From NCBI GenBank assembly GCA_965644265.1, contig OZ286471.1, positions 84,196,001-84,260,000 of the forward strand: 64,000 nucleotides of DNA. The letters run 5' to 3'. The stretch's first letter is position 1. Every line of letters begins with the position of its first letter. The notes beneath the pieces are model-generated. The model saw nothing but the letters and a program-made list of their open reading frames with translations. It had not been told where the DNA came from and did no database searches. Below, one piece after another: positions 48,751 through 49,810 of the stretch. The DNA is from Glycera tridactyla (taxonomy: Eukaryota). A program made the position numbers and the translations under genes.

Positions 48751-48887
48751 GGATGATAAATTCAGAATGTCACTCGTGCCTGGCACGCTGAGAGCTTACC
48801 CGCCTCGTAGCGTCCCCGGGGACCGCTACTTGGCGGGTAAGCTCTCAGCATACCAGGCACTCAGGACATTCTTGATAATTATCATCC
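48751..48887. repeat. 137-bp imperfect palindrome (right end of the Crypton)
   Basis: Arms ggatgataa...gctgagagcttacccgcc / ggcgggtaagctctcagc...ttatcatcc around the centre tccccgggga (48813-48822). Confidence 0.95.
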
Positions 48888-48899
48888 GATGTTGATTCT

Positions 48900-49810
48900 A
48901 GAGTGTTGGTAAGCATTGTCTTCCCGTACACCTCGGCGCTGGGCAGTAATCTGAGAGCGTACCACCTCCCAGCTGGTATTTTCATTTTTTGCGCTTAGGT
49001 CACGTGATTCGGAAGCGCCAATGCTGATTGGTCAGTCAAACAATCGTTCAGGAAAGAACAATCGAGGTCGAGGGTCAACTGGCTGAGTCATGCGTTCGAA
49101 TTGTTCAGCGTCTCGGCAAATATTAGGGAAGATGCCTGTAGAAAAAACGCCATATCTCAGCAACCAGTGGAACGATTTTCACAAACCAAACATGATATTA
49201 AAGCTGATATATAGTCCTATCTGGATCTGTGATGTGAGAAGGATTGGTTGAGAAATCCAAGAGAAATCGCCGAGTGTGTTCACAAAGTGACAGCATCGCG
49301 GGTTCGATTTGTGTACCATGTACAGCAAATGTAAGGAAAGATGCCTCTAGAAAATTCGATGAAACTCATCAACCGGTGGTCCGATTTTCACAAACTAAAC
49401 AGGAAATTATAGATAATATATAATCTTATCAGGATTTGTGATATAAGGACGATCGATCAGAAATTCATGGAGAAATCGCTGATTGTTTTCGGCGACTTTT
49501 ACACGGTGATCTCGCCGCCGTGTCAGTAGGCTCGAGTTCAAAGAGAAGTGCCGACACGTCGCAAGAATCGCTGTTTTCGGCGGAATTTTCACACTTAGAG
49601 GCTTTCAGATGTTGAATACAACTTGTTCATACACAGATTGGATGATAAATCGAGAATATCACTCGAGCTGGGCACGGGCAGGAATCACCTGCCTCGTAGC
49701 CTGCCCCGGGGAGGCACTCGTGGCCTGCGGCCACTCGTGCCTGCCCCGGGACACGCTACTTGGCTGGTAATTCCTGCCCACACCCGGCACTCGGGGCATT
49801 CTTTATAATG
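48900..49810 (+). mobile_element. Non-autonomous Crypton-like element directly downstream of the autonomous copy
   Basis: Left motif 48927-49007 matches 46081-46161 in direct orientation. Right palindrome 49640-49810 is homologous to 48751-48887. Non-coding interior with a ~210-bp direct repeat (49127 and 49335). Confidence 0.75.

Follow-up and report, generated by a model that had tools for sequence, protein, structure and literature searches.

What does it mean if the left-end motif of a Crypton-like element recurs immediately behind the right end of another such element: are we dealing with a single element with an unusually long end, with a composite that moves as a unit or with two elements that came together because one was integrated at the end of the other? 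The question is raised by a locus of Glycera tridactyla, which we analyzed within a stretch of 64,000 nucleotides (contig OZ286471.1, positions 84,196,001 to 84,260,000; hereafter the window, whose own numbering is used throughout). The original prediction for this locus had been a head-to-tail pair consisting of an autonomous and a non-autonomous Crypton. As a whole, our results are best explained by separate targeted insertions, in which members of the family target the left ends of residents and in which the autonomous copy was probably the newcomer, and we consider this explanation very likely.

Two elements that abut base to base

The boundaries of both elements can be read directly from copies elsewhere in the genome (Table 1). 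A genome search with 46020-48890 retrieved two siblings of the autonomous element (L032 and L033), which match the window from 46030/33 to 48878/81, then run into unrelated flanks and exhibit 96-97% identity (substitution identity 97.3-97.5%). The siblings end at window position 48878 and do not contain the 930-bp unit that lies beyond (48879-49808). That unit, in turn, occurs alone at least six times. A genome search with 48888-49830 yielded six near-full copies and many partial ones, the latter because copies elsewhere have one ~209-bp unit. The six solo copies (L002-L007, 89-94%) feature the identical two ends in unrelated flanks. When 45500-50500 was compared with these loci by BLAST, the near-full copies were seen to start at 48875-48879 and to end at 49808-49814, or at 49832 in L004, and a recombinase region was absent within 1.5 kb of the full copies. 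The termini proved to be fixed in nine copies, with flank/TTATCATCCG... at the left and ...CATTCTTKATAA/flank at the right (slashes denote the point of joining), and in the same nine copies, for which ends and flanks were compared, there was neither a terminal inverted repeat nor a target-site duplication. Constant ends, different flanks, both termini in common with autonomous elements and the absence of a recombinase gene identify 48879-49808 as a non-autonomous Crypton.

Table 1. Features of the Crypton pair and its right flank (window coordinates; strand in brackets).
Feature	Position	Description
Autonomous CryptonA-type element	46033..48878 (+)	2,846 bp; 5' TTATCATCCG ... CATTCTTGATAA 3'
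Left end L of autonomous element	46033..46161 (+)	terminal 12-mer TTATCATCCGTT, then conserved L motif 46081-46161
Recombinase gene, exon 1	46339..46414 (+)	ATG at 46339, GT donor at 46415; predicted by reading the sequence
Recombinase gene, exon 2	46613..48396 (+)	AG acceptor 46611-46612, stop 48394-48396
Right-end imperfect palindrome R	48751..48878 (+)	arms 48764-48817 / 48819-48872 (54 nt, 81%)
Foot GGATGATAA	48751-48759	reverse complement of the family's left terminus
Head-to-tail junction	48867..48890 (+)	...CATTCTTGATAA/TTATCATCCGAT; break between 48878 and 48879
Non-autonomous Crypton, other subfamily	48879..49808 (+)	930 bp; no ORF over 61 aa
Left end L' of non-autonomous element	48879..49007 (+)	first 10 nt close the outer stem of the hairpin in front
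Two ~209-bp internal tandem units of non-autonomous element	49116-49281 / 49325-49490 (+)	75%
Right-end imperfect palindrome R' of non-autonomous element	49640..49808 (+)	ends ...CATTCTTTATAA
Flanking hexamer TGCTCA	49809..49814 (+)	presumed original target hexamer of the right-hand element
(TA)n tract	49820-49841	ordinary flank

The autonomous element and the 930-bp unit abut base to base (...GATAA/TTATCATCCG) with zero spacer. A spacer of 39 bp and a right palindrome that extends to 48887, both part of the original prediction, therefore have to be abandoned: as solo copies begin at 48879 and autonomous siblings end at 48878, the bases 48879-48926 already belong to the second element as its initial 48 nt, and 48879-48887 represent its left terminus. 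The remaining anatomy is as foreseen. The left-end motif recurs in direct orientation (46081-46161 again at 48927-49007, 77% over 83 nt), the two palindromes are related (74-76% alike as direct repeats in one comparison of R and R', 74-78% identical in another), the ~630 bp between L' and R' are non-coding, and the (TA)n tract is found behind the second palindrome. In addition, the ~630 bp were seen to contain two tandem units.

The left end L can be aligned, without a shift in register, to 48879-49007 as well as to left ends from other subfamilies. L and L' have the first 10 nt and the conserved motif in common and are ~70% identical overall, while L' reaches 81-87% identity with left ends from other autonomous subfamilies (L034-L037, L045). 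Since L' is nearer to these, the autonomous neighbor is not the parent of the 930-bp unit, and the pair is not a duplication. Two elements were inserted separately at this locus, and the non-autonomous one belongs to the same superfamily but to a different subfamily. This bears out the claim that two separate, diverged elements are joined right end to left end.

Adjacency alone would also agree with one element with a long, complex right end or with a 3.8-kb composite that transposes as a unit, the latter having been suggested in the form of a possible co-mobilization. Both ideas are contradicted by the siblings without 48879-49808 and by the at least six solo occurrences of the 0.93-kb unit. 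In addition, when the genome was probed with 551 nt across the junction (48560-49110), matches to query 1-319/322, the autonomous right end, and to query 319/320-551, the non-autonomous left end, fell at different loci, and among the best 40 candidates no copy other than that in the window covers the full span of the probe. We consider a long right end or a mobile composite very improbable, and the proposed co-mobilization is not upheld.

Two further features of the surroundings deserve mention. Just upstream of the pair, a 166-aa ORF is located on the minus strand (45328-45828); ~130 nt of it (45642-45775) recur with 74-82% identity at 39 or more further sites of the genome and are probably a fragment of another repeat family. 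Downstream of the pair, an 84-nt direct repeat is present (50638-50721 / 50860-50943; 82%, 222-bp spacing).

The recombinase gene

The sole long sense ORF within 46033-48878 stretches from 46654 to 48396 and encodes the Pfam domains DUF3504 (1.1e-21) and Phage_integrase (6.3e-11). The domain and homology searches were performed with the exon-2 ORF alone. The closest Atlas clusters are DUF3504/integrase proteins, mostly from Mollusca, and the best database relative is 47% identical. The H-x-x-R and G-H...Y boxes align to an XerC-like recombinase with marginal significance (E = 0.054), and the similarity to IntI4 is likewise marginal (E = 0.26). Reverse transcriptase and DDE transposase are absent from the 2.85-kb element, which has this single recombinase gene. 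The N-terminal coding part of the gene contains a 98-nt direct repeat (46693-46790 / 46819-46916; 81%, 126-bp period) that is also present in the siblings L032 and L033.

The combination of DUF3504 and Phage_integrase defines the recombinases of animal CryptonA elements (PMC3212892). The resemblance goes further, in that animal CryptonA elements have a tyrosine recombinase with these two domains as their sole protein, are devoid of terminal inverted repeats and target-site duplications (Kojima and Jurka, 2011; PMC3212892), and give rise to short non-autonomous derivatives that far outnumber autonomous copies (PMC3212892). Judged from its gene content, 46033-48878 is classified as a DNA element of the CryptonA group and not as a DIRS or Ngaro element. 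Animal Cryptons have been described as lacking any sort of terminal repeat (Kojima and Jurka, 2011; PMC3212892). Unlike those, the family analyzed here has a fixed 12-nt left terminus, the reverse complement of which forms the foot of a right-end palindrome of 130-170 nt, a defined target hexamer and recurrent head-to-tail arrays.

A right-end hairpin completed by the next left end

In every element, the reverse complement of the left terminus (ATCGGATGATAA) sits 130-170 nt from the right end and is followed by a long imperfect palindrome that reaches the right terminus; in R', the arms of the palindrome are located at 49653-49711 and 49744-49802 (59 nt, 73%). Folding of 48740-48895 as DNA resulted in a structure of -56.7 kcal/mol (z = -13.5), in which an outer 10-bp stem pairs 48750-48759 with 48879-48888, i.e. 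with the left terminus of the next element; within this stem, 48879-48887 pair with 48751-48759. Such an outer stem cannot form at a solo end like R' but only across a junction of a right end with a left end (R/L junction). When 19 diverged copies were compared, compensatory changes were apparent in 26/51 predicted pairs. As pairing has been kept through these two-sided changes, the dyad symmetry must be under selection. The break point coincides with the center of a 12-bp palindrome, TGATAATTATCA (TGATAA/TTATCA), and the left-arm foot, read on the minus strand, is CATTCTTGAT·TTATCATCCGAT, which equals the junction lacking two A.

Some peculiarities of the hairpin were noted in passing. In the autonomous copy of the window, the right-end palindrome comprises 128 nt as opposed to 168 nt in the siblings (48751-48878 versus L032:1504-1671 and L033); what is absent is a central portion of ~40 nt at the tip of the hairpin (GCACTCGTGGCC...GGCCACTCGTGC). 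A motif CAC-TC-GTG (or CCTCG or ACTCG) occurs six times in the palindrome with the same top-strand polarity in both arms (49640-49808; 19-copy alignment). In the hairpin, these sites would make up three opposing pairs with TC/TC mismatches. Conservation of the motif extends across subfamilies and to locus L061 of another organism, and its central pair is 'repaired' to perfect pairing in 3/19 copies.

Target rule and crossover point

The 19-nt right end is present in 1,061 exact copies in the genome, compared to 0 for a control. For the genome searches, the best 40 candidates were scored and 100 places were listed, such that counts are lower bounds and samples stem mostly from contigs C1 and C4. 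A hand tally of 100 right flanks revealed a pronounced pattern. At +1, A was found 44, T 30, G 23 and C 3 times, followed by T in 75/100 cases at +2 (p = 2e-19), A (58) or C (26) at +3 (together 84), T (51) or C (40) at +4 (together 91; p = 9e-17), C at +5 in 50/100 and A at +6 in 36/100. Positions +1 to +5 all differ from the base composition of the window, with p between 2e-19 and 2e-7, and the same pattern is seen in the independent flanks of the loci that were fetched. The family inserts immediately 5' of D-T-A/C-Y-C-a, a loose copy of its own first hexamer, TTATCA. At our locus, the hexamer TGCTCA that follows the non-autonomous element agrees with most of this rule and departs from it at +2, where it has G while 75% of the targets have T. 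In the flanks to the left of 100 left ends, hardly any bias is discernible except for a scarcity of G at -1 (6/100, p = 1e-4). It had been expected that the family integrates into sites resembling its own junction. For the left-end half of the junction this holds true, as the right flank is TTATCA-like; for the right-end half it does not.

The crossover point is sharp. In a sample collected without a fixed hexamer, the left-end hexamer was exactly TTATCA in 86/100 cases and the remainder were single decays. A at +1, the state of 44% of the targets, occurred in 0/100 left-end hexamers, and only 3/100 right flanks exhibited TTATCA. From the 86 exact left hexamers and the three TTATCA right flanks it follows that the left hexamer is always that of the element and the flanking hexamer always that of the target, without mixing. 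Classical tyrosine recombinases exchange strands at two points 6-8 bp apart and tolerate mismatches in between, which should leave both versions at both junctions. The lack of hexamer mixing appears to favor one effective exchange point followed by replication or, instead, strongly biased repair.

The family also inserts into its own coding sequence and is not confined to ends, as is evident from a non-autonomous element nested in the recombinase gene of L043, an autonomous copy of another subfamily (L043:2555-3075). It is adjoined by GTCACA, and its insertion point is the equivalent of window position 48053/48054.

Preference for resident left ends

An exact right end directly followed by TTATCATCC was detected 18 times in the whole genome, while less than one such junction would be expected, even if only TTATCA-flanked ends are counted. 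When as many as two mismatches were tolerated, the number rose to 131, as opposed to 6 for a reversed control pattern. The frequency of R/L junctions, which had been named as a check of the original prediction, speaks clearly in its favor. All 18 exact junctions continue with CCGAT, and at least 14 proceed as true left ends (GATGTTGA, GATGTCGA, GATCGAGG). Two of the 18, situated 11 kb apart, resemble the internal mimic of the left terminus. Could two abundant repeats simply have come to lie next to each other by chance, without any targeting? The family is abundant indeed, with about 9,100 copies of the terminal 12-mer, but the ends meet to the base, and neither the 18 exact junctions against under 1 expected nor the 131 against 6 of the control are compatible with mere coincidence, the probability of which we take to be negligible. 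Overall, the solo copies, the junction probe and the junction counts led us to reject chance adjacency as well as the idea of a mobile composite and that of a long right end.

The strength of the preference can be estimated. The terminal 12-mer occurs 9,145 times in the genome (control: 258), and since an element usually contributes both a left end and an internal mimic, this corresponds to roughly 4,500 left ends. TTATCA sites number ~2.3 million genome-wide, as estimated from their density in the window for the 2.04-Gb assembly. Right ends next to a generic TTATCA amount to ~22 among the matches listed and to 28-43 after correction. Left ends therefore make up ~0.2% of the TTATCA sites, yet they receive 30-39% of the insertions next to TTATCA, such that a resident left end is used ~200-300 fold more per site than an ordinary TTATCA site. 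Self-targeting, as originally proposed, is thus borne out.

Other arrays of short elements were found at C1:90.97 Mb, C4:73.29 Mb, C4:85.78 Mb, C17:30.92 Mb and C34:30.64 Mb (by coordinates) and in locus L021. Among the printed matches, two places, C1:90973053-90973087 and C26:27810318-27810348, have exactly 6 bp (CTATAG and TTATCA, respectively) between a right end and a left-end-like sequence. At C34:30635306-30635491, also among the printed matches, two exact R/L junctions face each other on opposite strands ~130 bp apart, and the pair looks like one palindrome between two diverging left ends.

These arrangements are best explained in the following way. The right end (...CATTCTTKATAA) is always joined immediately 5' of a chromosomal D-T-A/C-Y-C-a. 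As this hexamer loosely copies TTATCA, a resident offers a perfect target in its left terminus, and because a resident left end adds the remaining left-arm sequence (TTATCATCCGAT), it is used so much more often per site than an ordinary TTATCA. A newcomer at such an end sits exactly upstream of the resident, and the junction rebuilds the full long hairpin, which would otherwise form only when the element's own ends join in a circle. The circular intermediate is presumed here, as is the action of the recombinase at ATAA^TTATCA.

Order of arrival

Which of the two elements was there first? Private substitutions, i.e. sites at which one copy differs from all its siblings, number 50/2,844 (1.8%) in the autonomous copy, for which only two siblings are available, and 26/832 (3.1%) in the non-autonomous copy (Fisher p = 0.018). 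Because the non-autonomous copy has more private substitutions, and in view of the target rule, we infer that it was probably the resident and that the autonomous copy arrived second, at its left end. The difference is small and could reflect lineage instead of age. A paralogous empty site that joins the two outer flanks was not found, the DNA adjacent on the left being single-copy in the genome: 258 bp adjoining the pair on this side are single-copy, and only 45642-45775 proved repetitive in a genome search.

The order may also have been reversed, with an autonomous resident and a non-autonomous circle that integrated at the junction of the right end and its flank, re-using the target hexamer. 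This hexamer survives intact beside the right end after insertion and is therefore re-usable, the final structure would be identical, TGCTCA suits most of the target rule, and stacking would proceed as for cassettes at an attC site. The larger number of private substitutions in the non-autonomous copy (3.1% versus 1.8%, p = 0.018) points in the other direction, and since nothing resembling a right end is needed to the left of the crossover, a resident right end offers no known advantage, whereas a resident left end constitutes a perfect left arm. We consider the reversed order rather unlikely.

Furthermore, two elements in the same orientation might have resided some distance apart until the right end of one recombined with the left end of the other, whereby the intervening DNA was lost as a circle. 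The product would be the same R/L joint, and active Cryptons of Chlamydomonas do bring about inversions, translocations and excisions in which copies and target sites take part (PMC9977147). Such a recombinase-mediated deletion requires, however, two nearby insertions in the same orientation, and the 200-300-fold preference for left ends already explains the junctions, so that we attribute only a slim chance to it. Our preferred reading remains the insertion of the autonomous copy at the left end of a non-autonomous resident.

Related loci in other organisms

A similar layout is present in L061, a 529-kb contig from a different assembly that encodes a recombinase with 38% identity. Its gene is followed, after ~280 bp, by a palindrome (arms of 45 nt). 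The reverse complement of the 14 nt at the left foot of this palindrome is located 470 bp upstream of the gene, and directly in front of that site stands the full right-end hairpin of a second element (89% identical). The array (L061:3030-5886) consists of a degenerate right end, this second element, which is non-autonomous (~498 bp, 3030-3527), and an autonomous element (3528-5886), the termini being related but different (TTTATTCCGTACTT ... GGGTGTTTTTATTA). As the same layout is found in L061, head-to-tail arrays belong to the clade and not to one locus, which suggests that the left-end rule holds across the clade. In L063 (Littorina), a palindrome with 64-nt arms follows the gene and its flank extends the pairing; a left end was not found in the Littorina locus. 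L062 has a palindrome with 79-nt arms after the gene, and a complement to the left end was not detectable on the 3.4-kb contig. L064 features an unrelated palindrome 2 kb from a truncated gene.

Comparison with known systems

The attC sites of integrons are imperfect palindromes with a conserved structure and a variable sequence, in which crossover occurs inside one arm, so that the final portion of the palindrome comes to lie at the opposite end of the unit that is integrated. For secondary targets of integrons, a short core-like motif is sufficient, and cassettes stack head to tail. In all these points our family is comparable. The likeness of our family to attC is one of function: it has an imperfect palindrome with conserved pairing and variable sequence that is split by integration. 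In contrast to integrons, the family is eukaryotic, encodes its own recombinase and has no fixed attI platform, and we do not file it as a member of the integrons. CTX phage and other elements using XerCD at dif, as well as tandemly accreting genomic islands, occupy one chromosomal site and often depend on host recombinases. They resemble the present family in that the resident offers or rebuilds the next site and that head-to-tail arrays of related, non-identical elements result; our family differs from them in that it inserts genome-wide at a loose hexamer, resident ends being merely preferred. By analogy with these systems, we tentatively envisage a structured, attC-like site at which the recombinase might exchange only one strand (at ATAA^TTATCA), perhaps with folded single-stranded DNA as its substrate, before replication completes the reaction, with elements stacking at left ends. 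This is a possibility rather than our expectation.

The internal complementary region of DIRS1 is reminiscent of the left-arm foot described above, in that the latter is an internal copy of the joined termini (CATTCTTGAT·TTATCATCCGAT minus two A). DIRS elements are, however, retrotransposons with a reverse transcriptase, and the present element has no such gene.

The closest parallel in targeting is provided by the Goodwin model and by the active CryptonF-1_cRei of Chlamydomonas with its terminus CACCG and its target CAYCG: as in our family, insertion takes place beside a short chromosomal motif that copies one terminus, which yields a direct repeat of terminus and flank without any duplication (PMC9977147). 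What is repeated in our family is the hexamer with which the left end begins, the match (D-T-A/C-Y-C-a) is loose and hexamers are not mixed. A preference for resident left ends and arrays were not reported for CryptonF-1_cRei (PMC9977147).

Significance

Non-autonomous Cryptons and targets that resemble a terminus are already known; the head-to-tail pair, the target rule and self-targeting are added here. In the searchable Crypton literature, we found no account of the defined hairpin site, the target hexamer, the sharp crossover, the preferred use of left ends of residents or the arrays. How Cryptons transpose is poorly understood, and to our knowledge Chlamydomonas is the only organism in which they have been seen to be active. 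Four testable results are now at hand for a Crypton family of animals, namely an exact breakpoint, a target rule, unmixed hexamers and a left-end preference of ~200-300 fold. The R/L junction, the left-end target and the generic hexamer represent defined substrates for recombination assays. Targeting of left ends explains the head-to-tail arrays and predicts that they grow upstream of residents. If the attC-like reading should be true, the family would possess a eukaryotic counterpart of the recombination mode of integrons and CTX, and its copy number would increase without double-strand excision.
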